From NCBI GenBank assembly GCA_965112155.1, contig OZ218098.1: a stretch of DNA of 64,000 nucleotides. The stretch is one strand, 5' to 3'. This DNA is from Podarcis liolepis. Its lineage: Eukaryota. Every line of letters starts with the position of its first letter. Position 1 is the first letter of the stretch. Made by a program: the position numbers and the translations under genes. The notes beneath the pieces are model-generated. The model ran no database searches, was not told where the DNA came from, and saw only the letters and a list, made by a program, of their open reading frames with translations. Of this stretch, positions 8,778-55,684 are shown one piece after another.

Positions 8778-8862
8778 TTACAAACAGCATCCCTTCCTCT
8801 TGTTGTACTCCTCCAGGTGCAATGCCTGCTCTCTCTGCTTGTCCTCATGTGCTGTCAACAGT
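8778..8862 (-). CDS. CRACR2B: CRACR2B coding exon 17 (hypervariable tail, prenylation motif, stop)
   Basis: [30 protein letters not shown]; ttgcag| acceptor. Confidence 0.92.
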
Positions 8863-11800
8863 CTGCAACACACACAAAATAGGAGGTCAGCACAGAAGAG
8901 AAGGAGTAAAGTAAGAGACAGGCAAATCAAATTGAGGGGGGGAGAAGCATACATTATCTCAGCATGAAAGGATGAGTACTCTAGCATCACACTGACAATC
9001 CAAAAAGCCAAACTAAGCTCACTGCTCCTTCAGAGACATCCAGTGTACCTTAAAGCATCCAAGGCAACATGATTATCAAATTCAAATCAAAGTGCATCTT
9101 TCGCAACTTATTTGGGAGCAGTTCCTCCTGAACTTAATGGGACACACTTCAGAGTGTGCATGTATTTGTTTGGACTGCACATCATCTTGAATTCAAGTAT
9201 TCTCAAACTGGCTTATGATTTAATATGTGATATCTGCTGAGAGAAACTGACCTTTCTGGGGAATCTGCAAGTTAACCCAACAGGCAGAGCTGGCTCAGCC
9301 AGTAGACAGGGTGAGGGTGCTACCTCAGGCAGCAGAAGCCCCCTGAGGCAACACTCCACTCCCCCCCCCCATGCACCCTGCCTGCCCTGCCACCTCTGCC
9401 AGCAGCAGAGAAGCGCTTCCGCCATCAGTGTCGATTTCAGACAAGTTTGAGTCCATTTCTGGCAAGATCTTGCCTGAAAACACACAAGATCTTGTGGAGT
9501 ATATAAGATCTCACACGATTTTTGGTGAGATCTCACTGAATCAGCACCAATGGTGCTGCTGCTTCTCCACTAGTGCCAGATGTGGTAGGGTACGCAGTGG
9601 CAGCAGAGTGGGCTGTGCAGGCAATGGTGGCAGCAGCCGGTATTGTGGTGGCAGTGGGAGTGGGAGTGGCAGCAGCGGCAGGGGAAGGCAGCACTTCCAA
9701 CAGGACAGATCTCCAGCATAGATCTGCTCCTGTCAGGAACTCCCAAGACAAAAACAAGAGACAGAACCTTAGCAAAGAATTAAGAACTTATGTAACCATT
9801 ACATTGGCCATAGGCCTCCCCCACAAACCTTCCATTCCCCAAACACTAAAATGAAGTGCTAACATTCTGCCTTGTGAGATTGTGGTGGTGAAGCTCTATG
9901 GCAGGAGTTGTTAACCTGAAGGCCTCTAGATGTTACTGGACCCCCAGCTCCCATTGTTCCTGACCATTGGCCATGCTGGCTGGGGCTGATGGGATCCAAC
10001 AGCATCTTGAGAGCCACATGTTCCCCAGCCCTGCTGTATGGTATCTGAGCATCTTGCAGTCTTTAATATATAATCCTACGGAGTATCCACCCTGTGATAA
10101 ATGGAGTTTAACTAACATTTGCAGTGTGGCAGTGCTGAAAGCACACAAGGCAACTGCAAAACATGGAGGAAGAAGTTATCTCCACCCACTGGACTCTTAC
10201 TGTTTAACTGGAACCAACACACTGCTATGTTTTGTCATCTGTTGCTGCTTAACCAGGACCAAGCCTAGCAACTTTGCTGCAACTGGATGAGTGGCTTCTG
10301 CTCTTTTTTTCCAGTTTCATGGGAACTGTTTGCACAGACCTTGCCATGTGCAGCATGGGCTCCTGAATGTTATAGCCAGTCCTTGCACTGCACTCATAGA
10401 AGACAGCTTTATATTCCTGCAAAAAGAGGGAAAGAAGGCAGAAAGTAACTTCAATCAACAATTGTCAGAGTCTGCCAATGGAATAACCTTTCCCCCCTTT
10501 CTTGCTATACCCATTAATATATTCAAGGTTAACCTTCCTGAACACTGAAGATACTCTGTCTTCTTAAAGGTTCCTTGCTATCTAATTTTCAATGAGGTAC
10601 CTAATTTATGTGAGTCAAAGCTCACTCACATTGAGTTCTTTTTGTTGGGGGCCATTCACAAAACCTTCAAAAGCCCAAGGTAACATTCTAAGGTTTGAAT
10701 AAGTTTACTGGAAGAATGTTTGCACAGGAATGCTTGAGGCACAGAGGTAATTCACACATATCCCTGAGCAGCATGAATTTTCCTCCAGGTCCCTACTTCT
10801 CACATACCTGATTCTCATACTGTCCTGTTATGTCTGTAAAACACATTAATTTACCTCCCAGTGTCACCAACGCTTAACCCTAACAGGTTTACTCTGAGAT
10901 TGCAAGGAGACTGGCTTATGATCGACTTTTCCCAAGGCAGATCCTCTACTTTGAAATATTCATTCACTTCCTTCTGTATAGAACCATCCTAGAAAATATT
11001 TTCATGCTCAGAACAACTCCCTTAAGTATTTCCAAATATTATCATCAGTTATGGAAGATGCCATAAAGTTTGTTAGCAGTGAAGGAGATTGGTGTAAGGA
11101 GGAAAGGGAGATACAGAGAACCAGACCTTTGCCAGCCTTTCCCCCTCAGCCCTGGGGACTTTGGGTTCCTCTTTGTCTGCTGTATCCATTTTGTTTCCAA
11201 CAAGAAATATCACTGCACCATCTTCAATTCCATCCTGAAGAAAAGAAGCCATAAGACATTGCTCAATGAAGCGTGTGCTCATAATTAAGGAGAGAGAGGC
11301 TAATTCCTACACTCAAGTATAAGGGTACTTAGAGAACACCTGACCATTTTCAGTTTAGACAATAGCTAAGCAAAGTTCTAGAACCTAGTTAAATGGTGAT
11401 CCATAAAGATTAAATAACTTACATAGTGCCTTTCATTTTGAGAAGAAATATTAAGGTGGTTCAATCCGATTTGTGCTCTTAAGGATCTGAATAATTTGCA
11501 TGTTCTGAATAAGGGACATTGGGGATAAACCTATCATATTTTTTATTTAAAGAAGAGTCAAGTTAATGCTTTGCCTCAATATTTTTTGGCATGCTTCAAC
11601 TATAATTAAAGTCAATACCTGAGTATTGTTAAGGTTAGGCTACCTGCCAAGCAGAAAAGGCTCAATTTAAGGAAAGATTATTTTGCTAGCACCCTTTTCT
11701 TTCTCGATTAGCTCTCTCCTTTACTCAGGTTAGAGCCAACAGGGATTCCTCCTACACCTTTCTCCAGGTAGACGAATAGGCTAACTGCACAGCCACACAT

Positions 11801-14800
11801 GCTCCCTCTGCCCTAAAGCTCCACAAGATTTCCAGCTCTCATCACCACAAATTTGTTGCCCTGTTATCACGACTCCTTGGGCCAGACTGTTGCTGTAAGG
11901 AGGACCATACTTTCTTCCTCTGGGTGGCTTGAATGGGGTGTGTCCACACACAGACACCATTTGCTAGTACCGCAGTATCAAAAAAAAGAGGTATGGACTG
12001 TAAAGACCAAGTTATCTGTGTTCCCTTCCAAGTTTATTCTGACCTGGATACAACTCATCCAGTTTCGGACCGCCATGAAGGAGCACTCTGCTGTGACGTC
12101 ATACATGACCAGGATGCCATCCACTCTCCGGAAATACTGCTTGGTAATACTCTGGAATCTAATGCCAAACAAAATATGAGAACCTTAAATGCATTCGTAC
12201 CTTGGCAGACATTCCACTACTCTTAACTGAACCTAGATTTGGACTCCCTCTGTGTGGCCTTCTTATTGCTAACAGCTCAAAATGGAGGCTTGTCTCCACT
12301 TACAAAATGGTGTATGGAGCACATTCCAGTCATTTCCTTTGAAAGGCTGAGGCCTTCATAGAAGAAGCCTGGAAGAACTGAGGATTTCCAACTGGGTAAG
12401 GTATTGGGTTACATGCTGACAACAGCTTCCCAAGCAGTGCTTGTGCCAAAACAGGAGGTATCACAAAGGAAAAGTTTTGAGAGAGGCCATAACTCAACAA
12501 CAGAATGTGTTCTTTGCAGGCAGAAGTTCCTAGGTGCATTTTCTGGTATGTTTTGTTTCATTTCCTGTTAAAGATCAGACATCTTCTTGAAACTCTGGGG
12601 AGCTATTGCCAGTCAAGAGTAGACCAGGGGCCCCCTATGTGATGACTGAGTGCATCTACAATAACCTTTTCCCCTGTTGAAATTAGACTTGAAGACAGCA
12701 TTTGATTGCAGCCAATATAATAGGTTGTGGTGTGTGCCCACAACAGTTCCTCCAGTTTGAAATGTTCCCAGAGGTTGAAAGAAGGTTGGCAAATCCTGCC
12801 ATAGGCAATACTCAGCTAGCTATGCAAACAGTGTGCCCTGGCAAAAGGCAGCATCCTGTGTACCTCCTAGCATTGAGATTTGGCACCACTGTAGTTGGTC
12901 TTGTGCAACAGTTGCTGTGTCATCTGGACTGATCCTGCTGTTTCTCTCCCCCCTCCCACCAGCAGCAAAGAGCACAAGGAACGGCACAGTCCTAAGGGGC
13001 TTGGATAGAAACCAGGAGCACAATTTTAGCAAGCCTCTCATCAGTGGAAGTACTACAGCCGCTGGCATGACTGTCATAAAGCACCCTTAACTTGGAAGAG
13101 GTGCACCCATAAGAAGAAGGACCCTTGTGTTCACTTTGGAGATAGAGAAGATTCTGCTTTAAAACAAGGGTGGAGAAAACAGGTTTTAAAAAGGAAAGAC
13201 TGTCTCAATGGCATGGGCCTGCATTTGACACTCATTGTCATCTCTCATACATCAAGGTTGTTTTTCTTCCTGGTTTATTCCCATCTCGCTGAATCACAGC
13301 AACAGCTAATGAATCACCACTGAGTTTTACACTGCAGCAGGCAGCTGCAAAACTAATGTAAATATTCCTCTACACACATTTTTGAGCAGGGTCGCTGCTC
13401 TCCCTTTAAATAATTATTTAGTTGAAAGGTAGGATATAGCCACTTAGGCAAAGAAGGGTCTGGATGTTGACCCGGGTTGTCCCCATTGCATTTCCTGTAG
13501 AGTTGTGTTCCCCCTTCTCTCAGCTGCTTAGAGTGTGCCAGAAAAGTAGGTGGAAGGATACACGTTGAATTCTAACCCCCTCCCCCAACAAAAAACTCAC
13601 TGCAAGTAGAAAGTTAGCATGCCAGCGAGAAAGGAGGCTAGAGTATGGTTACCAGATTTTTTTCAATGAATTCGGGGACACTTTTTTTTTTTTTTTTTAA
13701 ACTGAGTAGCAACAAGGAGTCAGTAGTGGGGATGGTGAGGCAAAAGACCCTGGGCCCAAGCACACATGCATATTGTATAAAGGTGCAAAGCCCTTCTTTC
13801 GCACCCTGTGTAACATAAATGCGCAGTTTTTTAAAAAATGGGCAACGGCCAGCCGCCCACAACTCCCAAGCCTCCCCCATCAGTCAAAACAAAGGGGGAA
13901 GGGGGAAGGAGAGCTGTACTGTCGGATGTCCCTGGTTCTCCTTCAGCAGTGGCGGTGGCAGTGGCAGTCAGCAGCCCAGAGCCAGCCTGGTAGTGCAGTT
14001 GGCTCTGGCTGGCTTCAGGAGCTGCTCGCTGCCATGGCACCCGCCATTTTCCCTCGCCATAAGTCCCCATATGATGTGTTGCACACAAGACACATCATAT
14101 GGGGACTTCCGGCAAGGAAAAATGGTGGGCGCCACGGCAGCGAGCAGCTCCTGAAGCCAGCCAGAATCAACTGCGCTACCAGGCTGCCTCTGGGCTGCTG
14201 AGGCTGCCGCTGCCATGTTTCCCGGGGACAGATTTGCAAATCCGGGGACTGTCCCCAGGAACCGGGGATGTCTGGTAACCCTAGGCTAGAGGGCTTGTCT
14301 AAACATGACAAACGTGTATAAGAAAACAGCAGTTTCATAAGGGGGAACTTTGGAGGAAATAAGTGCTGGGAGAGGGGAAGCAGCACGCAACCTTTTGCCT
14401 TGCCCACTCCTTGGGTCCAAAATATTTCCTCAAGCTGCTTCTCCCCTGACCCCCCAACCCACCCCTCTGCTTCAAATTGCTCTCTCCCCAAGAGAAGTTT
14501 TATTTTAAATGCCCACTCATACTTTGGTCATGAGGACTTGCTACACATGTTTGTGTGCAGCATACAGTACTTCCATTTATATAAAGAAAACTGTAAGTGA
14601 CCAGATTCTAAGAGTCTTGCATGCAAAAGAAAAGTACTGGATATGTGAAGTTTTACACTAGTCAGTTATTGCTGTTAGTGTTCAAGAACATGTGGAAATT
14701 TTGGAAGAAGGTTCAAGTCTCCTCATATTATCACTGTGTGCTTTTAGGGCTATTTACTGATCTAAATCTCACAAAATCCTTTACCTTTCCTGCCCAGCTG

Positions 14801-17800
14801 TATCCCATAGCTGCAAAACCACCTGTGTGTTGTCAACCATCAAGCTCTTCACCTGGTAATCAACGCCTGCAGGAGAAACAAGAGGAGTCTAAGGCCAGGA
14901 TAGCACAGTGGGCAGAGTTGGACTTTGCATCTGGGAGTCCAGGTTAAGCATGTCTGCTTGACTCCTTTTATGACTTTGGGCTTGGGACGGGGCACCTTTG
15001 GCCGCAGTTCCCAGCAGTTAAAGGGGGGCAATGAACTCCTTCGCAGTACTGTTGCGAAGAAGGCACCACAGAAAAGTCTGTAAAGCATAATCACAAAGTA
15101 AAAGTGCTATTGAAAACAGTAGATGGTCAGGGCTGGGGGGAAATGGGTGGGTTTGCAAATAGGTTCATTATTTATACAGAGTGGGCTGCAGGTTATTTTC
15201 TTGTCTGCTTGGAAAGCACGTGCAGCATCTGGTATGCTACCACAATTTGAAGTTAAAAGTCTTCCCAATGGCTATCAGTTAGTAGGGATTTGGGAGTTAA
15301 TGCCTTTAAACATTCTTAAGGCACTAAGACAGAAAGTAGCCACCATTTGCTCTTATCACCATCCCTCCACCAGTCCTCTCATCCATCCCCTACCCCTCCA
15401 CTACCTGCCACAGAGCAAAGTTAAGAGTCCCATGATCACAGCGGCAAAGGAGTAGACTTGACAAGAGGCCTGGTGAAAGAACAGACTACATGCGTCCTGC
15501 CATTGTGCCTTTTAGAGCATCACGGTATATATAAACCTTGCCTCTGACTGATTGGTTGTGATTTGAATTAGTCAGATCTTAGCACTTAGCTTGTCCTTAT
15601 CCATTTGTAACTATTCCAAAAAAACCATTTTAAAAATCCTCAATGTTAGTTGACTTTAAACATTATACCGCTAAAGGAATACATAGTGTGGAATGTCCAT
15701 GGGGAATATTGCCATGTTTACAGTAGTACTGAAAAGGGGGATGTGTAGTTCACAAATATTTCTGCTGCAGAAGTTGTTGAGCACATGGCACAAGCCTCGC
15801 TTAAGCACTTCTTAAATTCCCTTATGCCTCTCCCTTCTGCAGTTTGGGAGCCTCAGTTACCAATAGTTGAGCTGATCCCAGCCAGGAATCTATTGTAGCA
15901 GAAGCGATGGATGAAGGTGCTCTTGCCAACTCCGGAATTACCAAGAAACACTACTTTGAAGACACGGTCAGGAGAAGAACTAGCTGGCTCCAATACCTGG
16001 ATGCAAAAGCCATTATCAAGGTAAGAATGAAAAGGAAGAAGAAAAGTTTATAGAGCTAGGGTACAAATTGCATTTAAAACATTGCAAGGAACAGACAGTG
16101 GGAAAACTAATATGAGCAAATTTATACCCATGTTCATATCTGCACAACCAGTTGCATAGACTGAGGCTATGTTCAGATATTATCCCCACTTCTCACTGCC
16201 TAGAAAGCATCTGCATAAAGATCAGGTGTAACACTCAAGCTCACATGGTCCAGCAATTTTAACCTCACACTATCAGGGAGATAATGTGTTTAAATAAATG
16301 TGGGATCTCCTGATCCAGTCATTCATGTCACCCCTATAGTGAAGTGATGGCCTTTTCCCCATCTCACCTGGAGTACAAAATATCTGTACAGAGCCTGTTA
16401 ATATTCACCTAGCTGAAACAGTTTTCAGACTATACCATATGGGAGGAAGGAAAGACTGAAGAGCAATTTTAAAAATATCCACCTGCTTTGCAACATTTGG
16501 CCCTGAATAGATACAGGAGGTAAACAAAAAATTTCCAAAGGTTTTGCTGATGGATTTTCTCGTTTTTCTCCTTAGCATTTCTGTTCAGTGTCACTTCAAA
16601 ATTAGAAAATATAATTGCTACTAGGAATATAATATGCATATTAGTGCAGGTAGCTAATTGTCATGTCCCTGGCCCTAAACGATTCTTGGAAGACTGAATC
16701 AATTGAGGCTGTGGCTGCTATACTGCTGGCTGAAGAACAGAACGAGGCTACCAATTCTGAACCCGGGGTGATGGTTGTCAACCTGTGGACCCTAAACATA
16801 GGGAACTTCATGGCCACTCCCATGAGCCTGATTCACGCAAGGAACAAGTACATCCCATTCCACAATGCCTGCAACTGTCAGATGCAGAAGGACTCATCTC
16901 CAGGCCAGGAGGTCCTCGTTTTAAAAAGTCACAGGCAGGGAAGTAGACAGGAGAGGTAGGTAACCTGGGATATAGGAGTTATAAGGTTGCAGTCAAGCTT
17001 CAGCTTTTTCCTGAGCAAGTTGCTCACTTGGAGCTCTCCAAGGTACTGAAATGCCACTCTTCCTTCCTATACCCCAGCGTGGCCTGTGGACTCCAACTTG
17101 AAGTCAGGATGGGCCATTTAGTATACACAAAAAAGCCCACAAATGATTCAAGATTCAATAACAAAAAGACAATACATAAGGTTAGTATTCCCCACCCCCC
17201 GCTAGCTAGACTCACCACAGTTTCATTACCAATGGGCAGCCTTCTTGGCGATAAATGAAGATAATTAGGTCTGTTGGTCTTTTCTCTCTGGGATGTGCTG
17301 GTCTTCATCAGAGACTTTGGCTTCCCAACATTTCCTGCTGTTTCCTGCCTCTCTGTTTTCCTAAGAACCACATATTCCTCCACAGATGAATTGATTCCTC
17401 TTCCCTGCTTCAAACTGGCAGTGTTGGTCAGGAAGAGTTTACAGTTTTTCTCTTCCAAATAAAAATCTTTTGGCAGGACAAGGGGAGTACTTCCTGGAGC
17501 AAGCTGCCTGTGCCAAGGCACACAAACAATGGGAAGAAATGTCCAAAAGCATCAGCACAATCAACATCAGCATTTACAGAAAACTTACCCACACTTTCAT
17601 GTAACGTCAGCACTGATGAGGACAGGAAACCAACAGTCTTATAATGTGAGGAGGGAGGAGAGGAGCAGCAGCAGGTATATCAATGGGTTCCAGAATCCTT
17701 AAGGCATATCCACACTACAAATGTATGCTGGTTTTTAAATTAGTTTTGCCTCTTGGGGCTCCACTAGATGGGACACTGAGAATTGTACTTTTGGAGGGGC

Positions 17801-20800
17801 TCCAAGAAGTGTCAACACCCACAGAAATGAATGCATGAACAAAACAAATGAACAGTTAACATGTGGAGGTGTGGACAGGGCCAGAGGCAATGCTCATATG
17901 TTTTGGCAATCTACCTTGATTATCCAATATGCCTATCTAGTTGTGCTCTATATTTATATATTACTATCCCAAAGGAGGCCAAAGCTGTTCACATAGTTCA
18001 GAAATGTGTGAAATAACTTTGCTTATGGTGTTCTGCCCCTCCTCTAAATGCATGCAATGTAGGAAACTTGAGGGTGTGTATATGTTGAATCTCCTTGTTA
18101 TCAAAATTAGACTCACCCCCTCCTACCCACCTACACAGTCTCATTCAGTCACCAGTGCCCCACAGTCCCAAGTTCATCAAAGGGCAATTCCCCAAGGACA
18201 CCCATTGCCTCAACCTTAGTTCAGTTGAAGAGGAGAAAGGGAGAGAACAGTGTGACCCAACAGACCGACTGTGGTGACTACAGACCGACAGCATGCAGTG
18301 GGACACAACACAACATATTCAGCTCTGACCGTTTGACTGGCTTCTCCTCCACTAGGTATTTGCCTATCGCTGACCCCTTCTTCAAGAGGGGTCTTTTGCT
18401 TTCAAGTGCCTGAAAATTAGAGAGAGCAATTTGGAATCTGTCATCTAAGTAAATTAAGAAAAAACAACCACCATGTCACTTTGGGAGAGGCTCTCCAACA
18501 GTTAGTCAAGATTACCCCAGGAGCTGCCATTTTGTGGCTGATGAGACATTAAAAGGTTTTTCAGTTTTGGGGTTGGCATACAGAAAGTACTCAACTTACT
18601 TCAGTACCCCACTTGTTATTTATATTTAAAATTTAAATTCCAATAACAAAGAATGCATTCTCAGGATGAAAGTACAATTTCCCAGCTTTAAAATGCATCC
18701 CAGAGACGTAACAGTTCTGCACCCTGCTTCCAAAGTTGTGTGGATCGCTCACAACAGATTAATCATGATGGGACATTTATTGTGCTGAATACGGTTTAGA
18801 ATGATGAATCGAAAGATTATTCATAAATATATTAGTTGTTTCATTCAAGTGGGTTTTATTGTGTGCTTTGGGCAGACTCAGAACCCAGTCTTAACCATCT
18901 GATTGGACCTCTAAATGGTCTGTCATAATACAGTCATACAAAAGAAACACTTTACGCAATGGAACATGAGCACGAAAGAGGCAATTGTTTCCTGGCTGTT
19001 TCTCTAGCTCTTGCCAGCTTTTATTGGCTCAGTGTAACATTGGCATTTAAAAACAGACGATAAAGGAATATTGCATTGCAATGACAGCACACACAAGCAT
19101 GAAATATTTGATGAGAACGATAACAGGGTGCATGGCATTTTATTATGGAAGTCTGGATCACAGGCTCACATTCCAACAACAGCATGAATTCAGCAGTATT
19201 TTGCCATCACAATATTTGCTGTAAACACATACCAAAGACACATATGCTGTAACTAGACCCGTGAATGAATGGGTTGTACCTGGAGACTGGTTCCTAGACT
19301 TCTGGAAGGTGCATGCAGGTTTCTCATTAAGGGACACGCAAAGGACCAGATTGTACATGGCACGCAACTCCCTCCAAAACTTGTGGATGTATGGACTTGG
19401 GGAAACTCAGTTTCCATTCATAACACACAGCGGTACAACCAAGCGCAGTACAAAATGCAGAAGCTCAAGGCACAATGTTTTCAAATATCAATTTCAAAAT
19501 TAACTTCAGAATGTTTAGGATGGTAATCCGGATTAATGAACAACTGGGGACCTGAAGGGATTGGCAGAGGAAAAGAAGATGCAAGGAGCCGAGTAGTCCT
19601 CTGCAGCCTTGGAACTTGGAAAGGTATCAGCAGAGTTTCCACACTGTGCTTCAACTGTCCTAGTTTTGCACAGTATCTCAGGGCCTTACTAGAGTAAATG
19701 TTGGAAAACTCTTTTGAAATGCTTTTAGAAGCATCTGTGAGCAAATTAGACTAGGCCTGGAGTGCCTGATTGCTTGGTCCAATCTGAGAACTCAGATGTG
19801 CCCCTTGCAATCTCTTCAAAAGGATGAGGCAGGGGGCAAATCACCTGCTGGATCAATGTCTTAGCTGCACTTTGCCATGCCAGGCACCTGCTGTGCCTTT
19901 TAACTCTTGTCTTGCCTATGTACTGTGCGGACTGAAGCATCAAAGATTTTGGCAGAAACCAAAATCAAAGTTCAAGCTCTTCATCCAGCAGGGCATTTCC
20001 TCCCATTTAAGTGTGCATGGATCCACTCAGATTTCTCCCATGTTTCGTCTAGTTTGGCCTTCTCCCTCACAGTGCCAAATGATTTCCAGTGCTGGCATTT
20101 ATGCATAAACAGTCTTGGCATATTTAGAAGATTTTAATACTTCACTATTGCAAGGTCTCCCTGTTATATGTTGAAGCAGACTTGGAAATATGTCTTGCAG
20201 CGCTGGCAAACTGCCATAAACGTGCAGGCAAGAACAAGCCAGATATCTCTCCTACAGAACGATGCACTGTTAAACTCTGGCAACCTGATTGGTCCATCAT
20301 TATGTCACAGTGAATGAAGACTGGTACTGACTACCAACCAGGAATCTCTAGCTAAAAAACAGTACAGTTGCAAATCTAATGACAACAGAAACACCAGGCT
20401 AGGAAGGCCCTTCAGGCTTTAAAACCAAAAACCTCACCAGATCTACATTATGCCAGTATACCCCAAGTGTGCACTGGAGTTTGTGCTCTTCTCTATCTTA
20501 AAAAAGCAACAGCCTGCAAATGCTCCAACAGACAGACACAAGCATTGCAGTCTTGGACAAAAGAGAAATATACAAAGGGCCCATCATCAAGAGGCTTCAA
20601 GACAGGAAGTTGCTGCTTCATCAGCAGACTTCTTTTCTCCTTGATAATTCTCTTTGATGGTAGAAAAAGCCTTCTAGAAACACCATACTTTTTTTAACTA
20701 AGGCAAACAGACATCTTTTGTTTTTTTACTATTCTACAGCACACTCTTGCAATGGAAAGATTGCTGCAAATTACAGTTAGCATGAGCAGATATCAAGGGG

Positions 20801-23800
20801 TGTGTGTGTGTGTGTGTGCGCGCGCATATATAGTTGACAGGAACATAATGCAACATATTTTTTCTACTAGAAAAATTAGAACTCAACCTCCTTCATTCCA
20901 GTCCCTCCAGCATAGCTGTAGTTGGTACATCTTGATACAAGACTGAGGTTCAGAAAAAAGGGGGAATGTTTTAAAAAAGAAACAAATAAGGATCCTTTTT
21001 TCCATTAACTGAAGGTTTACATTTTACTTCAAGAGTCTGATGTGCTAACTCTAACCCATGCAACCTGCCTTTATGCAAGCACAGTCCACAGTATTATATT
21101 ATTTGTTTCTGCACTAAACCAGTTCTTTAAATCTGCAGAATGACTGTATGCAGATCAAAAGCTTGCTCTTTTTGAATTCCCACATCAGATGCAATCTGCA
21201 TGAAGAGTGGTGGGTGCCTTTCTTCCCTGCATCCAACAGAACCTCCATCTCATTAATATTTACTTTTCAAAGAGGATCAGACAACAAAAGCCATTGTAGC
21301 TTGCCTGGAGCCCATATTCCACTAGAGAACAGAGATAGCAGACTGTCAAAGGGACAATCCAGCAGCTACTTTGACATGTGAAGAAAAACCAATTTATGTC
21401 CATATGAAGTCTCTCCACGTCCCTCCATGCCATACTGTAAATTGCTTTCAATGCGACCCCACTCAAGAGTTCTAAAAGGTATCCCATGGTGCAGCATGAA
21501 AGGGATGCTCTTCAAAAAAGACATTAAAGTGCCAAATGGGATCTGAGAACTCACTGCATTGCTCTCTCTGAACTGCAACTGCAGAAGACAGTTTCTCCCT
21601 GCTGCTTCTGCTGCATTTAATGATCTCATTGAGACTATGGAGATCACATGCCCCCAGATTTATCTGGAGATGCAGCCACAGGCCTAGTAATCAGAAAGAT
21701 GAGTCGTGGGACAGCCGGAGAGCCAGCCCACTCATAAGGCAAGGTAAAGAAGCCACCTCTGGTGGTGGAAACACAACAGGCGGTGCCCCACCAGCTCTCC
21801 GCCTGCCCCACCACTTCCACTGCAGCTGGAACGCTCCCTTCTAGGCCTGCAGAAAAGCTTTGTAGAACAGCTCACACTTGCTCAGTTTTGCAGTTGCTCT
21901 CTCTCTCCACTCCTAGGTAAGAAAGGCTTCAGTGGGGAGGCAGCAGCAGTGTATGTTGGGGAGGGACACCTCGTTTCACCCTCAGATGGCAAAACAGGAT
22001 GGGCCACCCATGGACAGACAGACAGGTGCACAGATGTTTGCACAATCATACCCAAAGATTAGAACATTGCACTGGAAACTTCCCTCTCCTTTTTACACAA
22101 AAACATACATAGCAGCTTCAATAAAAACATTCCTGCACCCTACGCTTGTACAACACTAAAGACTAGATAGCTGATCAGCATACGCCCCCCCCCCTTATAC
22201 TTCATTCCTGCCCTGCATTTGTGAAGCAGGGAAATCAGCCGCAAGAGGTCTTTTGGCTCATCTTCACATTTTGGTTGTCTGCCTCGCTGGTCTACGATCA
22301 AATCTACTAAGTGGTATGTTTCGTGGACATTACATCTCTCCTACCAAAAACAAACTGCCCAGGGATGGAAAAGGCCCATTCCAGGAGCAGGCCAAAGTAA
22401 GAGGCAGAAACAGACAAAAAGACATCTTGTTTTCAGTCTCTTAATTGTGGGCTGTGTGACAATGGAAGCCTAGAAGGATATAGGCACAAGGTGATATAGC
22501 AGAAGAACTATAGGCTGGAATGAGGCAAGGCAGTTCCAGAGATGAATTCCAGACTACTCTGCAGAATGGTGGTGGTGGGAAGAGAAAGAACATAACTAGG
22601 CCTTCTCCAAGCTAGATGGTAATGGCTCAGCCTTAAAACATGGAGGTTCAGCTACGGTTCCTCTGAATGGAAGCCTTACTGTACGAAGTTCAGGGTGTGC
22701 TAAACATTCTCTCCCCCTCCAGTTTGGAGGGACACCCAACTGTAAATGCTTTCTTGTAGAGTCAGGAGCCAGCAGTCCTTATTGCCCCCTTTGTAATTGC
22801 CTGGTTTAAAAATGTGCAGCTCTCTCTTAAAAAAATAATAATAAGTCCACATGCAGGCACTACAGGGTTTCTCAGTCAATGCCCCCCCTGTAAATGAAAT
22901 GACCCCAAGTGATGGCAACAACAGCAAGCTGCAAAGGGGAGGCGACGGGGGATTAGAATTTTCTTTCTCAGACTAACCAGCTTCTTGGCTTCAAAGGCAT
23001 CTCTCTCGTCTCGCAGTTTCTTGTTCATTTCCCTGCTCCAAAGGAAAGAAAGACACACAGAGGTAAGCGGTGGCAGTTGCTCTACACATACTGTGGTAGG
23101 GAACTAACAATCCTCAAAGAGAAGTGAGAAAGGGGAAGAGACCACTCCTTTTCACAACCACAAATCCCCATTCAGGTTTCACAGAAGCTTCCTGTGGCCT
23201 AAATCTTCACTGTAGAAATGGCTTTGGTGCTGCTCTCAGACATTATTTTAGCACCATCTATTGCCACTGGGGAACTGAATCACCCAAAGCACTGTACAGC
23301 TTGCTGCTTAGGTCAAGTGGCAGCCCTGTGGGTCTGGCCAATTCCGCTGGTTTATTTGAATAGCTGACATAACACCAAGGAGCTTTTTTATTCTATATCT
23401 CCCTATACACGTGAACAAGCCCTCAAGGCCCCACCTTTACCTGAGCAGTTCCAGTTGTCGCAGGAGGCTTTTCTTTTCTTTCTGCATATTCTTAGAGACT
23501 CTGAATACATCCCTAGATTTAAAAAGGGAAGGGGAGGGGTTAGTGTTTTAAGGGTTACAAGTTTTGTCCTGTGCAAACGTTGATAATATGACCCAAATGC
23601 CAAAGCTGCTGGCAGCAATCAAGGGCAGAGGGTGGACTAATTAAATTAACACTGGGTTAGGAGCTGACTCCCATTCTTGCTCTCCATGACTTGCTGATGC
23701 AAAATATCATTCTCTTGGTTTCCAAGAGAAATTCCAGCTGAGGACCAAATTTACATGTACCCTTTTTGCACCCATCACACTGCTCTGCTCCCCAATCACT

Positions 23801-26800
23801 CCACCTCCCAAAGTACCTTTCCTGTTAAAAATGAGCCATTAGTCTATGTTTGCATACAGTTCAAAATAATAAGAATGTTTACTGTGCATACTGCGTATTT
23901 AAGTTAAAATGCCTACATCAGCTCTAGATTTTTTTTTATTACTAAAAATAACAACCCTGTACCATTTGGGACTTTCTATCTGAGGAGAAAAGGTGGCAGA
24001 AGATCTACCTACTGGGATCCTATTGTTCTGCAGACGTTACGTCCAAATTCTTATCCCGGTTTATAACTGAAGTCATGTTTTGGCCAATTCAGTATTAGAA
24101 AGTAGATTTACTCTTCAATAAAGCAAAGGATCGCCCAATTTGCAGTGACATCATACAATTTGCAGTGACATCATACATTTGACTGATTGCTGTGGAGATC
24201 AGTGTTATTGTTTGCCACATTGTTTGTTCTCAGACTGGTAGGAGCCATGGTTTTGACAATACAAGATTTGGATTGACCTTTTATGAATTGCTGTGGGGCT
24301 TGCTTTCCGAGCCATTTCTATCATGGTCTTTTAGGAAACGTAACCAGGGAAATGATTTTTATCTCTAGTTTACACAGAGCAGGGATAGCCAATGCGCTAC
24401 CTTCCAGATATCGTTAGACTCCATCTCCCATCATCCCTGATCCTTGTCCATGCTGACTGGGGCTGATGGGAACTGAAGTCCAAGAACATCTAAATGGCAC
24501 AACGTTAGCTACCCCTGACAGAGAGAAAAGAAATCATGTTACTAACTCAAGGCCACATAGGAAGTAGATTTGTGGAAGAGAATAAAAACATCATGCATGT
24601 TCTAATCCTTTAACTCAGTCCTGGAAGCTAGAAAGTGTTCATGCTTACAGACCCTCTTTAATTTTATTTTATAAAAATAATGTAACACTTGATTGTAAAA
24701 CAACAACAAAAACTACCTCAAGGTGGTTGTCTACCTATTTGGGTAAGGCTTGCCTAAACAAAAACACTTTTAGCAGGCGCTGAAAAGAGTACAGTGAAGA
24801 GACCTGTCTGATGTCAATAGTCAGAGAGTTCAAAAATGTAGGTGCTGCCACACCAAAAGATCAATTTTTTACAAATGCAAACCAGGTACAGTGGTGCCTC
24901 GCAAGACGAAATTAATTCGTTCTGCGAGTTTTTTCGTCTCGTGAATTTTTCGTCTTGCGAAGCACCTCTTCAAGCAATGCACCCTGGGTATTAACGGTTT
25001 TAAGAAAAAGGAAACAAACTTGCAAGATGTTTTCGTCTTGCAAAGCAAGCCCATAGGGAAATTTGTCTTGCGAAGCAACTCAAAAAACGAAAAACTCTTT
25101 CATCTTGCGAGGTATTCGTCTTGCGAGGTACCACTGTATTATGTGGCACCTGTAAACAGTGCCAGTTCTGCAGTTTGCAGTAGCCACATATTATTGCTAT
25201 TCATTCCTACATTCTGTAGTCCCACTGATTAACTAATTAGCGTAAACCAGCATTACACAGCAAAAGCAACTGGCACTTTTCATTGCATGTTCTACAGCCC
25301 CACCCAAACACACCTGTTTTTCTGTTCCTGCTCTAGCTGGGCTTCTTTCTGCAGCTGTTGCAGGTGACCTCGGGCTACCTCCAGCTCCCATTTGCTTCTC
25401 TCCAGTTGGTCCAGGAGATTGTCGTTCAAGATTTTCAGCCTCTCATTTTGCACCCGCATTTCCAGCTGCTCTGAGCTCTGGGACTGTAACTGATGTTCCA
25501 GCTAAAAATATGTAAGAAATCAAGATGAACAGATCTGAAAAACCAAAAGTACAAAGGCATCAGTAGCCAGTGTCTGCAAGCAGCTTTGAGCTGTAGGGGA
25601 GGCAGAATAAGAATATGTTAAATTAAAAAAAAGTTGTACAAAGGAAAACAGAAAGCAGAGCAATACATCTGTGAGGTTTTTTTAGCTGCAATGCATTCAA
25701 GTACATTAATAACGATAACATGTTAAGGACCTGAACCAATGGATTTAAGTTACTAGAAAGGAAATTCCAACTAAACATCAGGAAGAACTTTCTCACAGTA
25801 AGAACTGTTTGACAGTGGAAGCGATTCCCTTGGAAGGTGGTGAATTGGAGGTTTATAAGCAGAGGTTGGGGGGCCATCTGTCATGGATGCTTTAGCTGAG
25901 ATTCCTGCACTGCAGGGTACAGTAATTACCATGGTATCAATACCCCAAAGACCTTCTAGCTGCATTTTCATTCCCTATTGTGAAGTGGTCTTTTGTGGTC
26001 CTAATCTATATCCCTGTTGGTCACATGAGTGGATAACCTCAGAGTCATAGAATTGAAGAGTTGGAAGGGACCCTGAACTGAGAAAACCCATATGGGGGAA
26101 TTCTTAATCTCCTCTCTGTTGTTTTGCCCCAGCGTAACTGCTCTTTAGTTTTTAAACAACCCAGAGCAAATACTGACACTGACTTACCCAAACTGCACCA
26201 ATAACGCAAATTACACAGTGTTATCTCTCAGCCGCATTCCTATAAGAGGATATTATGGCATGATGATAACGTCATGTGCAAACAGAGCAGATGGCCTTCC
26301 TTGGGTTGGTGGAGGTGGAGTCACTTCTTTGGAGCTAAAACATGAATGGTGCTGGCATCACATACTAAGGTTGTGGGCCTTGGAGGTTAAAGGAGGACAC
26401 TGTGTGCTTTGCAAGTGGGGCAGCAAGCTAAAAGGGCCCTCACAGCTGAAGGTTTAAAATCCTGGAAGGAACTTGGCATCTCAGGCACAAGAGCCCAAAT
26501 CCAGCTCTAGCCCTGTACATGTGTAAGAAGCGATGACTTTGGTGTCAAAAGACACCGCCAGCCAGTTCAACGGGACCTGTGTAGACAATGCAGAGGGTAA
26601 AATCCAAATTCAAGCAAAAGAAACAAGGGGCACCCCCTCCAAGTCACCTTTTTCTGGTGGTATAGCATCTTCTCAAATTCTTGTTCTTTGCTCTGCAGCT
26701 CTTTCTGAAGCAAGCTGCTCTTCTCATGCTTCACTGATCCCTGCAAAAAGCAGATAAATTGGTGCTTTTCCTTTTTTTCTTCACTCCAACGTTCAGCATA

Positions 26801-29800
26801 AAAATAAATCTCCAGCACTTTGCAAGGATGTGGCTCATTGATTTAGCAACTGAGCTCAGTGTCCAGCTCAGGCATCCTGAGAGTGAAGGAATGATGTGTT
26901 TACCTGGTTCAGCAGCCGTTCCCTTTCTGCTTTGATTTGTTGCTCCATTTCTTCATAAAGGCACCTGATTTCGCGGTCATGGTCTACCTCCCTTCTAAAA
27001 GCACAGAGCAAGAGGGATGAAATGCAAGGAACAGATACAGTGTAAAGACAAAGTGGGAGGAGGGGGGAGATTGGGGGGAGGGGGAGAGAGAGAGAATTAC
27101 CTCTCCACTGAGAGAAAATAAATACGTCTCAGCTAACATAAGATGTGCTGTCTCACTTTTCAGGAACTTGAGTATTGATATGGAAATCCTCTGGCACTAG
27201 GGGGCGCCAGAAAGGCTTAAAAAGCTGCACATTGAGAACATTTTCTCAGGAAACTTTTGCTACCCAACTGCTCATGCTGCTTAAGGTTAGACTAAGTCTG
27301 TGTACACATTACTAGCTTAAAAAGCAGCTAGTCTGTTCTTTTCCCCAATCTGGGTTGAAGCTGGGGAAGGTTTTGGGGGTTTTTTTGGAGAGGGGGCGTT
27401 GTGGGAAAACATATCAAAACAGTATTTCAAAAGCAATGACAGGATAAGTACCAGATGGAAGTGGATCGTGGCTAACACTGTGTGTACACCGCTTCCTAAA
27501 CTAGTGGTGGAAGCACACTGGATACAGACAAAATTTTAGTGTGTGCACAGCCTGTTTGCTGCAGGTGTGATTGGGTTATAGAGGAAGAAAATATTCACAG
27601 AGTAATAGGTCCTGTTGAAGGCATTTGGACACTTCCACCTCCTTCTTTGGCATTCACAAATCCTCTTGTGGATGCTGAGTGAAACTTTCCCTCCCACTTA
27701 CAGCATCCTAAGACTGCATTGCACTTTCTATGGCATAGTCACATGCCATCCAGAAACTGCTTACCGTTTCAACGCCTGCTCAATCGATTCCTTCTCGTGA
27801 TGTATGTCCCTGACATATGAGGAAATGTGGAAGAGAAATTCTTCAAAACTGGTTAGGAGTTCTGGCTTTTCTTTCCGGAGTTGAGCCCAGAGCTCCTGAA
27901 CCTCGTTCTGACTGGAGCAAAGACAAACAGTAAAGTTTATCAGCTTGAGAGTAATAGATAAGCATAGTCCTTGCACCAAACAGGCTATAAAGAACTTATT
28001 TTAAAGTACTTTGTAGTTAAGCCTCCTAGTCATCCCTCCCTGAGATGAGAAAATCCAGGAAATAAGACGTCAAAAGTCCTCATCTTAAAAAGTAAAGATG
28101 CATGTGAACATGTATACACTGTTGGAGAATCTCTTCCCCCATGTGATTTTGTCCGAGCCTTATTATGCTCCTAATACACCCATCCCTTTCTACTAGTCCA
28201 CTGCTACTCATGCTAGTCCCAACATCATCTGGAAGACCACAGGTTCCCCATTCCTGTTGTAGCAGTGCAGCCCAGGAAAACATAGCACAAGCATATTAAT
28301 GAAGAGGACATGATAGATAGAAAGGGTCAAAGCAATGCTTCTGCGAAACAAGTTTCCTAAAGATAGCAACAGCAATCGTAATACAGTGGTACCTTGGTTT
28401 ACGAACTTAATCCGTTCTTAAACCAAGGCGTGCTTTCCCATAGCAGCGTGGGACTCAATTTACAAATGGAACACACTCAACAGGAAGCGGAACATGTTCT
28501 ACTTCCAAGGCAAAATTCACAAACCAAAACACCTACTTCTGGGTTTGCAGTGTTCATAAACTAAGCTGTTCTTAAACCAAAGTACCACTGTAATAAACAT
28601 GCACAGGTTGGAAAGTTCCAACTTACTCTTCAAAGACCTGGGATGCTTCGAGCTGCTCCAACATGGAGCAAAACCTCTTCTCTTCCTCTTCCTGGTCCAA
28701 GTCATCTGACCAGCCTGACTCAAAAGTCTCCTCGTGCCTGGTGCTTCCAGAGCTCTCATACTGCTCAATCCCTATGAACTTGCCTAGTCAGTGGAATGAG
28801 AAAAACAAAGGACTATAAGATCTCTCTAATCCCAGGTATGGCTTGCATCAGTGTTTGAAGGGGAGAGAGCTTGTGAAATCCACAAGCTCCATATCAGACC
28901 CCTTCCACCTTTAGCCAAATCAGGGCAACAGTAAAAATTAAAAGAACTGGAACTGGTCCACTTCAAACACAGAACCATGGTTCACTTCTGTAATGAAGGA
29001 AGGAAGCTCTTCACATGCTCAAAGGCACTCTCTGCATTACTCCATGTCACTTTCGTTATTTCAAATGTTCCAAGGGTAAGCCGTTCCACTCAAAACAGGT
29101 TCAAGGACTGCGTCCTGGACTTTAAACAATGCATTTACCATGGAGTTCTATACATGTCTACTCAGAAATGAGCCCCACCTGAATTCAATGGGTCTTACTT
29201 CTAGGTAACGGATCAGGGCCAGATTCATACATGCTGAGGCTCTAAACAATGCCAAGTTTAAGAGACTTCCATAGTGTTACCCTCCCCCCCAAAATGTGTA
29301 ACTTCTAACAGAAAGGACAATAAAAACAGAAATAAAAATTAAAGTTTTATATTTGCATACGGACTGGTACATAGGGGAGGGTAAAACTAAAAAATAACCA
29401 TCTGACTAAAACATATATTGCAATAAGCTTCTCTTTATAGAAAACACCTTTAAATTAAAATGCCTTATGGTTTCTTACTTTGCCCATATGAAGACTTTTA
29501 ATGCACAGCAGCACAATATCTGTCACACTTTAGAACTTACTAAATGAAAAAGGCAATACAGCCTGATACACAGCCCTCCCCAACCCATCATTGGTTTGAT
29601 CCATTAAAGTATGGTTGTTTTAAGAGTTAACCACTCTGGCCTTAGAGACTGGGAACTGGCACAATTGCACAATGTCAATACAGGTCGGTCCAATTCCAGA
29701 TGTTACCCACTGAGCTTTAGGACACCACGACATTTATGGCTTGTGCAAAACACACTACGAACATGACTGTGTTCTAGTTCAAATAAGAGCCTGCCGTTAC

Positions 29801-32800
29801 CTTCTTGCCTAACTCCCCACTCCTGATAGCTTTGATCAGCACTCTTCCTGGAATCTTCGTCAGATTCCTGGAACTGTTGACTTAAAGCTGTTTTCTTAAG
29901 GAGAAAAAAGGAACTTGGCTTCTTCTAATCAGCACAGGGCCATAGAAAAGCCAGAAAAACCTCTGCTCTCCCTCATGCAGCTCATACTTGGCAAAACAGC
30001 TTTGGCTACACTTTGCTGCAGGTGGATCTCTCTGCGGTGGCTGCTGCACAATGTCTCCACAGGAGCTGCGTGCTTGAGCGCTGAACTGGAAGCATTGGAA
30101 AGAGCCTTCTCAGCAGAGACAGTGAGTGTATGGCATGATATAGCCCCACCTCAGCATTGCTCACCAGTAGGGTGGGTGCACGTTCCACAATCATGCTGTG
30201 CAAGCATGAAATCTGGTGCAATATACAGGAATTCACTACTCCAAGAACTGCACTTTTGGAGATAAGTTTGAAAGCATGTATGGCAAAGACAGCCCCAGAA
30301 GCTGCACATCATTCTCATATATATGTGTGTGTGCGTGCATGCGCATGCGCGCACGCCTGCTTTATATCTAGCAAAAATAACTTTTGCCATGTAGGAGTAT
30401 TGCACTGGCTTGAATCTGGTCCCTGGGTTTCTATCTCAATACCACAGTTCCTTAATTCTCTGCAGTTGCCTTGGCTGCCTAATATACGGTAAACTGCCAG
30501 TATTCCAAGGAAGGAAAATATTTATGTTAAGAACACAGGAAGCTGCCTTATACTGTATCAGACTCACTGGTCCATCTAGGTCAGTACTGTCTACACTGAC
30601 TGGCAGCAGCGCTCCAGGGTTTTCGGCAAGAAACCTCTCCCAGTCCTACCTGGAGATGCTGGGGATTGAATTTGTGGCCCTCTGCATGCAAGGCAGAAAC
30701 TCTACCACTGAGCTAAGGCCATTTTTCCCATTCTGCCCACTGCCCACATACATGCTAAGCAACAGCAGTTGTCATTTTCTCCATATAGCCACTGAGCTTC
30801 ACACTCTCTCGTTCCTCTTACCTAGTCCCATACTGAATTCGACTGGCGTGAGATACCCATTATTGTCTTGCTCTAGGCTGTCAAAAACAGATTCTAGTTG
30901 TTCGGGAGTGAGAGGAAGTTCACTTTGTAGCCGCTGTGAAGGAGGAGGAAAAAGAAAGGACAGACCATTATAACCACAAGAAAAAACTTCCATTCATCCT
31001 ATTTTCCCAGCTCCCTTCACTGTTGCTGCCACAAGTGGCCAGATTCAAAGTGTGCAAGTTGCAAATTCTTAATCTGAGCCCAAACCCAGAAAAAGGTGAC
31101 CTGAGGAAAGGAGGAATTCCTGACAGGCAAAGAGAAGAGACATTTCTGCATAACACATGTGAATGCCTTGTGTTATGTAGTGTAGTTTCACCCTGGGCCA
31201 ACAGGGGGATACTGTATATAGTTTTCACTCAGGTCCGCGGCAGTTATTTTAGGCGGGAACTCTGGGCTGTTGTGGTTACAATGTTGACAGCCGGCTGCCT
31301 ATAAATACAGGCCGGCTGAGCTGTTCGCAGTCAGTTCTATTCCAGCTTACCATAATAAAGAGCTACTTGAAGAAATCGCTGTGCCGGCTGCTATGTCAAC
31401 CCACGACTTAACACCTTGCATTCAAGGTTGCTGACAAAATGCACTTTCATGACACAACACTAGTCTTCCCATTCAGAATAGCCACATAATTCAGCTTCTG
31501 AAGGGACTGTGCCACTTCAAAATTCAAGTGTTGGTTGCAAGATCAATTGTTCAACCATATTAAAAAACAAACCTGCTTGTGAAGGGCGGCCCTACTGTTA
31601 GGAAGGATGAGGCAGCTGCCTCAAGGAGCAAATGCTGGGGGACAGCAGTGCAATTCCCGACTGTTCCTCCTGTGTCCCCCTGCCATTCTCCTCCTGCGGC
31701 ATGGCCGGTCCTGCTCCACCTCCACAAACAAACAAAAACATTCTAGCTCATGGCTTGGGTGCATGGTAGGAGGGAAAGCTTCTACTGAACATACAGATTG
31801 GGTCAGAGGTTGCTGCACCCCCCTCAAGACATTGATTTTTCACCCTTGCCAAACTCAAGTCAATGAGCATTGGAGCTTGTTGAGAGCTCAAGCCATTCTC
31901 CATAAGAAGGCAACAGAAGTCTGTGAAGTCCAAGCTCATAATAAGGAAAGGAGTGGTGCAAAGACGATGTTTTGGTACAAGACAATATATCTGTGTCCAT
32001 CAGGACAGATACTGCAAGTGCTTCTGTTAACAGGTGTGTGTACAAAATCTGGCATTACATAATTTATTGCACAACTCACTGGGGAAACCAGCTCTTGCTT
32101 AATAAGCGTGAAACAGGATAAATTCGCCGAGTGACCTCAGGGGCTCTGGGAGCTTTAACGGTTGTACAAAAGAAGGGAATTCAGCAGGTGGAAGTTTGCA
32201 GGTCAAACTCCACCTGCAGACATTCTTTCTTCTACAGAACTCTTGCAAAGGTGCAAGAAACCTGCCCTCCTTTTTCACCTTGCTACCCTAAACCAAAGAT
32301 GGGCACAGAGTGAGATCTGGATCTGGTGGTAGATGCCCGAGTGATTTACAGTTTTGTTTTTAACAAAAGCAATAAAATGGCCCAGGGCCAGCCCAATATA
32401 TTTTGCAGTCTCAGACAAGGACAAGCTACCCCCATTCTAGAAGCCAAGTGGACTGGCAGGTGAAAGTTACTCCAACACCAACAAGCGGATAGTGTCCTCC
32501 GTATCACCTGAGGGAAGCAGACCAGTTTGGGAGGAGCAGGACAAGCTCTGCCCTCCAATAGAGGGCGAATGGTGCACTCACTAGCTCCCTCACTCAGCCT
32601 GACGATATGATTTCTTTATAATACATATTGCCTGCCCTTCAATCAGAAGGTTGTAGGGTGAGTCGCAGCATGTAACAACAGAAAACATGCACAATACAAT
32701 CAAAAGAGCAACAAACATAACATAAGCAACTACCCACAACAATAATTCAAGCACAGGGTTGAACTCCCTCATCCAGAAGTCATCAGCCAAGGGGACCAAC

Positions 32801-46383: not shown

Positions 46384-47249
46384 TAATCATAAACACATAC
46401 ACAAACACCTATCTGGTCTTGCTCATATGCATTTACACTTAACTTTAGCAGGCGACACATTTCCCATTATGCTTCTTTCCACACCAGGAAAAGCACCACC
46501 TGCCAAACTTCAGTGTCTCAGGCAGCTCTTGAGAGGCAACAACTGCAGTAAAGAACAATGCAAGAGTTTGACACCTGCAGTTTTCTCAGCACTGAACCGC
46601 ATCCATTGCAGCTCCACCTGATGAAATTCTTCCTGTCACTGCAAAAGAACTATGCCAGCGGATTATATTTTTTTTTAAGATAGCAGGTTCAGGAGGGCTT
46701 TGCTAAAGAACCACATTACGCATTTTAGTTTTTAAAATGTGGTTATAAACAAAATAACTAAATAAAGTCACCATCTTATCGTCTAAGATTGCACTGAAGA
46801 AGTGGCTCTGTGTTCACAAAACCTCATTATCAGTTTGTTAGCGTTTATTAACACACCTAAGATGCCACAAGAATCTTTAACGTGTTTGCTAAAAGAGAAT
46901 GAAAGCAGCTGACTCTCTAGAAATCTCATCGGGGAGAGGAGCCACGTAAGTAAGTGAGGTGGGTGGCCCAACACCATAAGCTTTCGTGGAATTTTCTGTC
47001 AGCCGATTAGGACGCATTCCAGCCACTGAAGGCTCCGGATACCTCAAAAGGAAGCCTTCTACAGCTCAATAATCACATCCTTTCGCAAGTAATACCGACG
47101 CATTCCTTCCAATGGCCATTATCGGCAAGCCTTTCGGGGGCGTCGCTTCCCAGCTACCTGTCCGCAGGTCAAGGCAGACCACAGATGGGGCTGCAGGTGG
47201 GAGGAGTGGTTCCTTTCCGAGGGAAAGCCGCGTTAGCCAGGTGAAGTGC

Positions 47250-55419: not shown

Positions 55420-55684
55420 TCAGAAAAGCTGGAGGCTTTCTTGTGTGCAGCTTGCTGGCGGGTGCCTCATCTGCAGCCCTTCTGATGGGAAGATGGACGC
55501 CTGCAGGTCCACGTTAATGCAGAACAACCCCAGCATCAGCTGGCGCTGGTACTCCTCCCATTTTGTCATAACGTCCGTCAGGGAGAGGTTACTCCGCAGC
55601 CACTTGGGCAGCGCCTCCCCATAGCCGATGCTCAAGGGGAGGGGCAAGCTTTGGCTTTTTCTGAGTTCCAGGTGGTAGTACAGC
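55420..55684 (-). CDS. PNPLA2: PNPLA2 last coding exon
   Basis: [16 protein letters not shown]...[32 protein letters not shown]...LQLF-TGA. Confidence 0.93.

Follow-up and report, generated by a model that had tools for sequence, protein, structure and literature searches.

Does CRACR2B belong among the large Rab GTPases that carry EF-hands? Human CRACR2B (also named EFCAB4A) is described as short, at ~399 aa, and as lacking a GTPase domain, and its gene lies between those for PNPLA2 and CD151. The question is raised by a 64,000-nt stretch of DNA from Podarcis liolepis (assembly GCA_965112155.1, contig OZ218098.1), which is referred to at its full length as the window and contains no runs of N. 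An initial annotation of this window described a CRACR2B gene in which exons for a linker and a full Rab domain follow the coiled coil. We find that the window gene is very probably the lacertid CRACR2B/EFCAB4A ortholog, with an architecture of EF-hands, a coiled coil and a Rab domain as read from its sequence. The overall reading that we favor, and in which we have good confidence, is that of a CRACR2B ortholog with an ancestral Rab architecture and two products. In the following, 4A refers to CRACR2B (EFCAB4A) and 4B to CRACR2A (EFCAB4B).

Its coding sequence is spread over 17 minus-strand exons that run from 33876 to 8778 (window coordinates). Exons 1–9 (33876–22978) encode the EF-hand/coiled-coil half, and exons 10–17 (18409–8778) encode the linker and the Rab domain. 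The spliced coding sequence of 2091 nt comprises 696 codons and a stop codon, with zero in-frame stops and zero frameshifts, and canonical AG/GT sites with matching phases were found across all 17 exons. The initial annotation had listed eight in-phase exons after the coiled coil, and these have AG/GT sites and phases that continue the frame of exons 1–9. Every motif that it listed was found on the minus strand as placed, without stops or frameshifts, and its coordinates for the junction between 22978 and 18409 and for the gene end at 8778 are exact. The six Rab-domain exons (12–17) total 603 nt in a single frame that closes with the stop codon. Two Rab motifs are formed only by splicing: IGVDY straddles the exon 12/13 junction with a split Gly codon (G/GC), and RFQSIT straddles the exon 13/14 junction with a split Arg codon (AG/A).

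At 678 of 687 residues (98.7%), the window exons agree with the Podarcis muralis RefSeq protein XP_077787784.1 (P0153), a 696-aa protein named EF-hand calcium-binding domain-containing protein 4A (CRACR2B), from here on the proxy. Searched exon by exon, exons 12–16 tile the 162 positions of the Pfam Ras family in order. Exon 12 (15861–15996), in which the Rab domain starts with the G1 P-loop GNSGVGKS and the switch I residues STI(G), matches positions 1–32, while exon 13 (14785–14866), with (G)VDY of RabF1 and WDTAGQE of G3 including the catalytic Gln, matches positions 34–59. Exon 14 (12044–12158; 38/38 residues identical to the proxy) contributes (R)FQSIT of RabF3, YFRRV of RabF4 and LVMYDVT of RabF5 and covers positions 61–97; exon 15 (11127–11234), with NKMD of G4, covers positions 103–132; and exon 16 (10340–10416), with ECSAR of G5, covers positions 134–156. 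Chance cannot explain this ordered tiling. The last exon, exon 17 (8778–8862), has an AG acceptor and encodes the tail KRKGCCL, a candidate CC-x prenylation site, followed by the stop codon at 8780–8778.

The proxy matched Pfam Ras with an E value of 6.5e-50 over profile positions 1–159 of 162 and EF-hand_6 with 28.6 bits (cut-off, 25). Thus, the EF-hand and Ras families that the initial annotation had expected were both matched, exon by exon as well as in the proxy. All chains in the Protein Data Bank (PDB) closest to the proxy are Rabs, and the solved structure that scores best is that of the human RASEF/Rab45 Rab domain (PDB 2p5s; 2.4e-50), ahead of Rab26, Rab8A and Rab6.

The nucleotide-binding motifs G1–G5 are complete (GNSGVGKS, the switch I Thr in STIG, WDTAGQE, NKMD and ECSAR), and GTP binding and hydrolysis by the CRACR2B Rab domain are predicted from these intact motifs. 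The RabF1–F5 motifs, which distinguish Rabs from other small GTPases and were reportedly defined by Pereira-Leal and Seabra, are also present (26 residues together with LVMYDVT) and are conserved in the 4A clade. A 10-residue stretch around G3 is invariant in 24 of 24 aligned 4A proteins, no complete 4A long form in the alignment departs from NKxD of G4, and of the 23 complete 4A rows, 22 have ECSA-x at G5 and gar has ECSVK. The C-terminal residues are GCCL; CC-x preceded by a basic stretch is kept in 4A, 4B and invertebrate homologs, including all 4A rows in which the C-terminus is present, and this tail could be geranylgeranylated. Together, the P-loop, G3, NKxD, G5, the RabF motifs and the CC-x tail are kept in 4A proteins from sharks to lizards.

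Upstream of the Rab domain, exon 1 (33676–33876) contains the start codon at 33876, the first EF-hand and a GT donor and is identical to the proxy at 67/67 residues. Its residues 44–67 gave weak Pfam matches to EF-hand_6 and EF-hand_7. Exon 2 (30822–30933; AG/GT, phase 0; 37/37 identical) contains the second EF-hand loop of 12 residues, and exons 1 and 2 align in order to EF-hand_7 profile positions 2–25 and 37–62, respectively. They are followed by exon 3 (28627–28783; AG/GT, phase 1; 51/51), exon 4 (27765–27911; AG/GT, phase 2; 48/48), exon 5 (26904–26994; AG/GT; 29/30), which belongs to the coiled-coil region by family description, exon 6 (26648–26740; AG/GT; 30/31), exon 7 (25314–25501; AG/GT; 62/62) and exon 8 (23441–23512; AG/GT; 23/23). 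Exon 9 (22978–23032; AG/GT) is the last exon common to the short and long forms, with its donor right after 22978, and is identical to the proxy at 18/18 residues and to shark 4A at 94%. The linker is encoded by exon 10 (18330–18409; AG/GT, phase 0; 25/26), the first exon specific to the long form, and exon 11 (17216–17507; AG/GT, phase 2; 92/97), which contributes 97 fast-evolving residues and had no match to any Pfam family.

To which paralog does the gene belong? Compared with the paralogs of one shark, overall identity is 58% to 4A and 39% to 4B, and every exon, whether N-terminal or Rab, is nearer to 4A than to 4B proteins. A maximum-likelihood tree of the Rab part was built from 53 proteins, including 24 4A rows, 19 4B rows and single-copy invertebrate homologs. 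It separates 4A from 4B with 100/99 support, places the lizard proxy in a squamate clade within the sauropsids and leaves the invertebrate proteins outside the split. In the tree of the N-terminal part (372 residues), to which two marsupial and three amphibian EFCAB4A proteins were added, the 4A/4B split has 100/100 support, and the marsupial and amphibian proteins are on the 4A side with the lizard. The trees include neither vertebrate RASEF nor eutherian or monotreme CRACR2B. The 4A clade that contains the lizard gene follows the species tree. Moreover, a shark 4B query retrieved long CRACR2A proteins in sharks, coelacanth, lungfish, ray-finned fishes, amphibians, turtles, crocodilians, birds and gecko, and long 4A and long 4B proteins are found in the same species in sharks, coelacanth, lungfish, gar, bowfin, turtles and alligator. 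The identification as CRACR2B by the initial annotation therefore holds for both halves of the protein, each of which falls into the 4A clade with 100% support, and the N-terminal half does not group with CRACR2A.

The long form is already present in public models. Besides the proxy, such models exist for Lacerta agilis (XP_033011460.1; 696 aa), P. raffonei (701 aa) and Anolis carolinensis (XP_008106579.1). A phmmer search with exon 12 alone returned full-length EF-hand and Rab proteins of ~700 aa, and the best long match, P0002 from Elgaria, maps in order onto window positions 33876–8781. A word-index search with P0002 gave, among the best 120 matches, ~100 proteins of ~670–800 aa, nearly all named EFCAB4A/CRACR2B and all with precomputed EF-hand and Ras Pfam domains. 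The taxa among these matches are lizards, turtles, crocodilians, birds, sharks/rays, chimaera, lungfish and coelacanth as well as bichir, sturgeon, paddlefish, gar, bowfin and eels. The initial annotation had cautioned that automated models may include the Rab exons, and RefSeq indeed holds ~100 such models. Because the same 696-aa form is already in public models, the sequence and the long gene model are not new; the novelty is the recognition of CRACR2B as a fourth large Rab.

Other models cover part of the gene. The Ensembl P. muralis isoform P0430 (415 aa) includes exon 10 (26/26 residues). Some bird annotations divide the locus into an "EFC4A protein, partial" (~304–327 aa) and a "RAB44 protein, partial" (~174 aa); these pieces are P0438, P0440, P0443, P0447, P0469, P0470 and P0474 as well as P0461, P0487 and P0497–P0499. 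Because the bird "RAB44" piece P0438 is 82% identical to the Rab domain of lizard CRACR2B, the label "RAB44, partial" on this protein is wrong as judged by this identity, and the CRACR2B long form accounts for the repeated mislabelling of the Rab half as RAB44 in some bird genomes.

How old is the Rab module? Invertebrate single-gene homologs with EF-hands, a coiled coil and a Rab domain were found in acorn worm, brittle star, octopus, abalone, brachiopod, horseshoe crab, Hydra, Hydractinia and Nematostella. Because single-copy homologs back to cnidarians share this architecture, the sequence comparison indicates that the Rab module is ancestral to the CRACR2 family, predates the vertebrate CRACR2A/CRACR2B duplication and was inherited by both paralogs. 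The initial annotation had proposed that the module is ancestral in both, in agreement with the coexistence of long 4A and 4B proteins and with the invertebrate homologs. Between lizard and shark, the six Rab exons are 53–77% identical, and linker exon 11 is 26% identical; exon 10 is 62–81% identical from gar to lizards. This pattern of exon identities argues that, from sharks to birds and lizards, purifying selection has preserved the CRACR2B Rab domain.

No long form from a mammal, amphibian or snake was found among the best 120 matches, which include fishes at 46% identity; this is suggestive, as Rab exons left out of an annotation would escape a search of protein models. A search with the short-form tail found marsupials (two) and amphibians (four). 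The marsupial EFCAB4A proteins P0420 and P0421 (414–419 aa, including both Macrotis isoforms) and the amphibian EFCAB4A proteins (P0415–P0419 and P0506; 432–498 aa) have no match to the linker or the Rab domain, and the snake models found are of the short type only (P0255, P0256 and P0269). The marsupial proteins fit a loss of the Rab domain on the mammalian line, which their sequences suggest, and amphibians and snakes may represent further independent losses of the Rab exons or missing annotation. Thus, of the proposal that the Rab module was kept in this lizard and lost on the human lineage, the first part is borne out by the intact exons, while for the second part only the marsupial short proteins fit. 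In the N-terminal tree, the marsupial stem has 1.07 changes per site vs 0.1–0.2 for other tetrapod stems, which suggests fast change in the mammalian N-terminal half, in a lineage for which a long form was not retrieved.

The locus has an alternative end that points to a second product. If the donor of exon 9 is read through, the reading frame continues for a 33-residue Cys-rich tail (22876–22977) to a stop codon at 22878–22876, and the product would be a short protein of ~405 aa with the EF-hand pair, the coiled-coil region and the Cys-rich tail. Splicing of exon 9 to exon 10 would instead give the 696-aa large Rab with the EF-hand pair, the coiled coil, a linker of ~125 residues, the Rab domain and the CC-x tail. 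The same Cys-rich tail ends annotated short forms in squamates, birds, tortoise, caecilians, salamander and whale shark. The marsupial proteins, for which the short type is the only product found, have a looser Cys-rich tail after the same exon 9 sequence. Because this tail is conserved from whale shark to birds and recognizable in a looser version in marsupials, the short form is, by sequence, as old as jawed vertebrates.

Several points weigh against the reading of the window gene as a CRACR2B ortholog with an ancestral Rab architecture and two products. The joined 696-aa protein was not searched as such; its exons were searched singly, and P0153 was used in its place for the Pfam, PDB and tree analyses. 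The EF-hand matches obtained exon by exon are weak (E of ~0.003), and the assignment of exons 4–9 to a putative central coiled coil is family-based rather than predicted, these exons being homologous to the corresponding CRACR2A region in alignments. All sauropsid 4A proteins have Glu at position 1 of the second Ca2+ loop (EQDNNG or EQNNNG), where sharks and every 4B and invertebrate protein aligned have Asp; because the loop starts with Glu rather than Asp, Ca2+ binding or affinity of the sauropsid 4A proteins may differ from that of CRACR2A. Four candidate RNA runs covering 17150–23100 gave contigs that cross introns 9 and 10 without splice joints, i.e., they are DNA-like and uninformative on splicing, and no run is on record as RNA for the stretch. 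Finally, open frames on the minus strand between 63086 and 55423, which may be the last exons of PNPLA2/ATGL by their resemblance to the human protein, had no match in Pfam, the PDB, the ESM Atlas or a literature motif search.

These points have to be considered together with three other explanations of the locus. The Rab exons might belong to an independent small-Rab gene downstream of a short CRACR2B gene, the two having been fused by annotation pipelines. Such an arrangement would match the short-only models in Zootoca and Ensembl P. muralis and the division of the locus into EFC4A and RAB44 in some homology-based bird annotations, and no spliced read over the 22978–18409 junction was obtained. 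The divided bird models, however, presumably derive from mammalian references, for which the short form is described, and an Ensembl P. muralis isoform (P0430) already has exons 9 and 10 linked. An open frame runs through exons 10 and 11, which have canonical splice sites and are in phase with exons 9 and 12, and exon 10 is well conserved from gar to lizards, as described above. The fused architecture is also found in CRACR2A and in invertebrates, including P0015 and P0132, which lie whole on contigs of ~2.5 kb; because a whole protein fits into ~2.5 kb, we read these contigs as spliced transcripts. Moreover, the trees of the two halves are congruent. We therefore regard two separate genes as improbable.

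Even less probable is that the Rab exons are a decaying relic that is open by chance and no longer selected. The module is seemingly missing in marsupial, amphibian and snake models, in line with loss being tolerated in some lineages, and linker exon 11 evolves fast; yet lizard-shark identity in the Rab exons is far above the 26% of that linker, none of the 24 4A rows departs from the G3 stretch, conservation extends to the remaining nucleotide-binding motifs and the CC-x tail, and the branches of the Rab tree are short and in the order of the species tree. We give the least weight, i.e., next to none, to wrong orthology, in which the gene would be a copy of CRACR2A, RASEF or RAB44 and its Rab domain expected. 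Naming in the databases is inconsistent, with lungfish and some shark orthologs called "4B-like" and the pigeon protein "ras and EF-hand domain-containing protein-like," but both halves yield the 4A/4B split with 100% support, and a separate 4B gene is also present in lizards, alligator, turtles, sharks and lungfish. In addition, marsupial EFCAB4A falls into the clade of the window gene in the N-terminal tree, and identity to shark 4A (58%) exceeds that to shark 4B (39%). The identity as CRACR2A, RASEF or RAB44 was rejected with the 4A/4B trees and the shark identities against it.

Around and within the CRACR2B gene, we noted several further features. Four PNPLA2-like open frames are located on the minus strand at 62856–63086, 60283–60600, 58261–58542 and 55423–55719, and CD151 coding exons are outside the window. 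If these frames do belong to PNPLA2, that gene would be the immediate upstream neighbor of CRACR2B and share its strand, as in human. A CpG island at 47000–48500, between the PNPLA2-like exons and exon 1, has a GC content of 0.53–0.65 and a CpG observed/expected ratio of 0.71–0.86 (500-nt bins) and is likely the promoter or a 5' untranslated exon of the CRACR2B gene. A second CpG island, 3' of the gene at 1001–2000, is a possible promoter for the gene that follows, in human CD151; across both islands, the GC content reaches 0.65, and the CpG observed/expected ratio is 0.7–0.95. Within intron 9, the contig depth at 18800–22200 was 2–5 times that of the neighboring exons 10–11 in runs X1–X3, and a repeated element may lie there. 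A near-perfect hairpin at 13968–14201, in the intron that separates exons 13 and 14, has two 112-nt arms that are 90% complementary and 10 nt apart and is probably an inverted repeat element pair.

What might a CRACR2B large Rab do? On the model of CRACR2A-L/Rab46 and RASEF/Rab45, the protein would be held at a vesicle membrane by its prenylated Rab domain in the GTP-bound state, and the Ca2+-sensitive EF-hand pair and the coiled coil would recruit partners. The best candidate for such a partner would be dynein-dynactin, contacted through its light intermediate chain, and a role of the CRACR2B long form as a dynein adaptor is, on this analogy, conceivable at somewhat less than an even chance. 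Taken as a whole, it is about an even call that vertebrates have a fourth EF-hand large Rab in the CRACR2B long form (CRACR2B-L), which has gone unnoticed in work on Rabs because mammals lost the module. It would then be expressed and act in sharks, basal fishes, turtles, crocodilians, birds and lizards as a Ca2+-linked, prenylated vesicle Rab and possibly as a dynein adaptor. Mammals, and perhaps amphibians and snakes, would have lost it independently of one another, and what was left of the mammalian protein, its N-terminal half, would have changed in a burst. In the literature that we searched, with subscription papers on chordate Rab evolution outside its scope, we found no link of CRACR2B/EFCAB4A to a Rab or GTPase domain or to dynein, and no paper treating CRACR2B together with CRACR2A and dynein. 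In published accounts, CRACR2B figures solely among Ca2+ sensors (PMC8156796), and the mammalian large EF-hand Rabs include Rab44, Rab45/RASEF and Rab46/CRACR2A-L (PMC8303950).

The CRACR2B long form, ancestral and conserved for ~450 million years and missing from the retrieved marsupial proteins, would thus add an unstudied member to a small family that acts in granule and vesicle transport. It also offers a natural loss-of-domain comparison, as the short form alone seems enough in mammals, whose N-terminal half evolved fast. With the sequence already held by RefSeq and Ensembl, the gain is one of interpretation rather than of sequence discovery.

Compared with known systems, the window gene has the same architecture as the non-mammalian EFCAB4A models, from which nothing essential differs and which have automated names and no functional description. 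Mammalian CRACR2B is its ortholog; the marsupial proteins group with the lizard N-terminal half and have no linker or Rab domain. The paralog CRACR2A-L/Rab46 (the long form of EFCAB4B) has the EF-hand pair, coiled coil, linker, Rab domain and CC-x tail in the same order as CRACR2B-L. For CRACR2A, the literature describes a short form that lacks the Rab domain and a long form that has it together with a prenylation site (PMC8303950, PMC4300414), i.e., the same logic of a short and a long product as in lizard CRACR2B. A long form has been described in mammals for CRACR2A, while none was retrieved there for CRACR2B. CRACR2A-L forms a separate clade with 100% support, is ~39% identical overall to lizard CRACR2B and differs from it in the P-loop (GNSSVGKT vs GNSGVGKS) and in RabF3/F4 (RYRSIT/FFRKA vs RF[QR]SIT/YFR[RK]). 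RASEF/Rab45 likewise combines EF-hands, a coiled coil and a Rab domain and is the more distant member, with GDAAVGKS as its aligned P-loop; its Rab domain (2p5s) is the closest solved structure by sequence.

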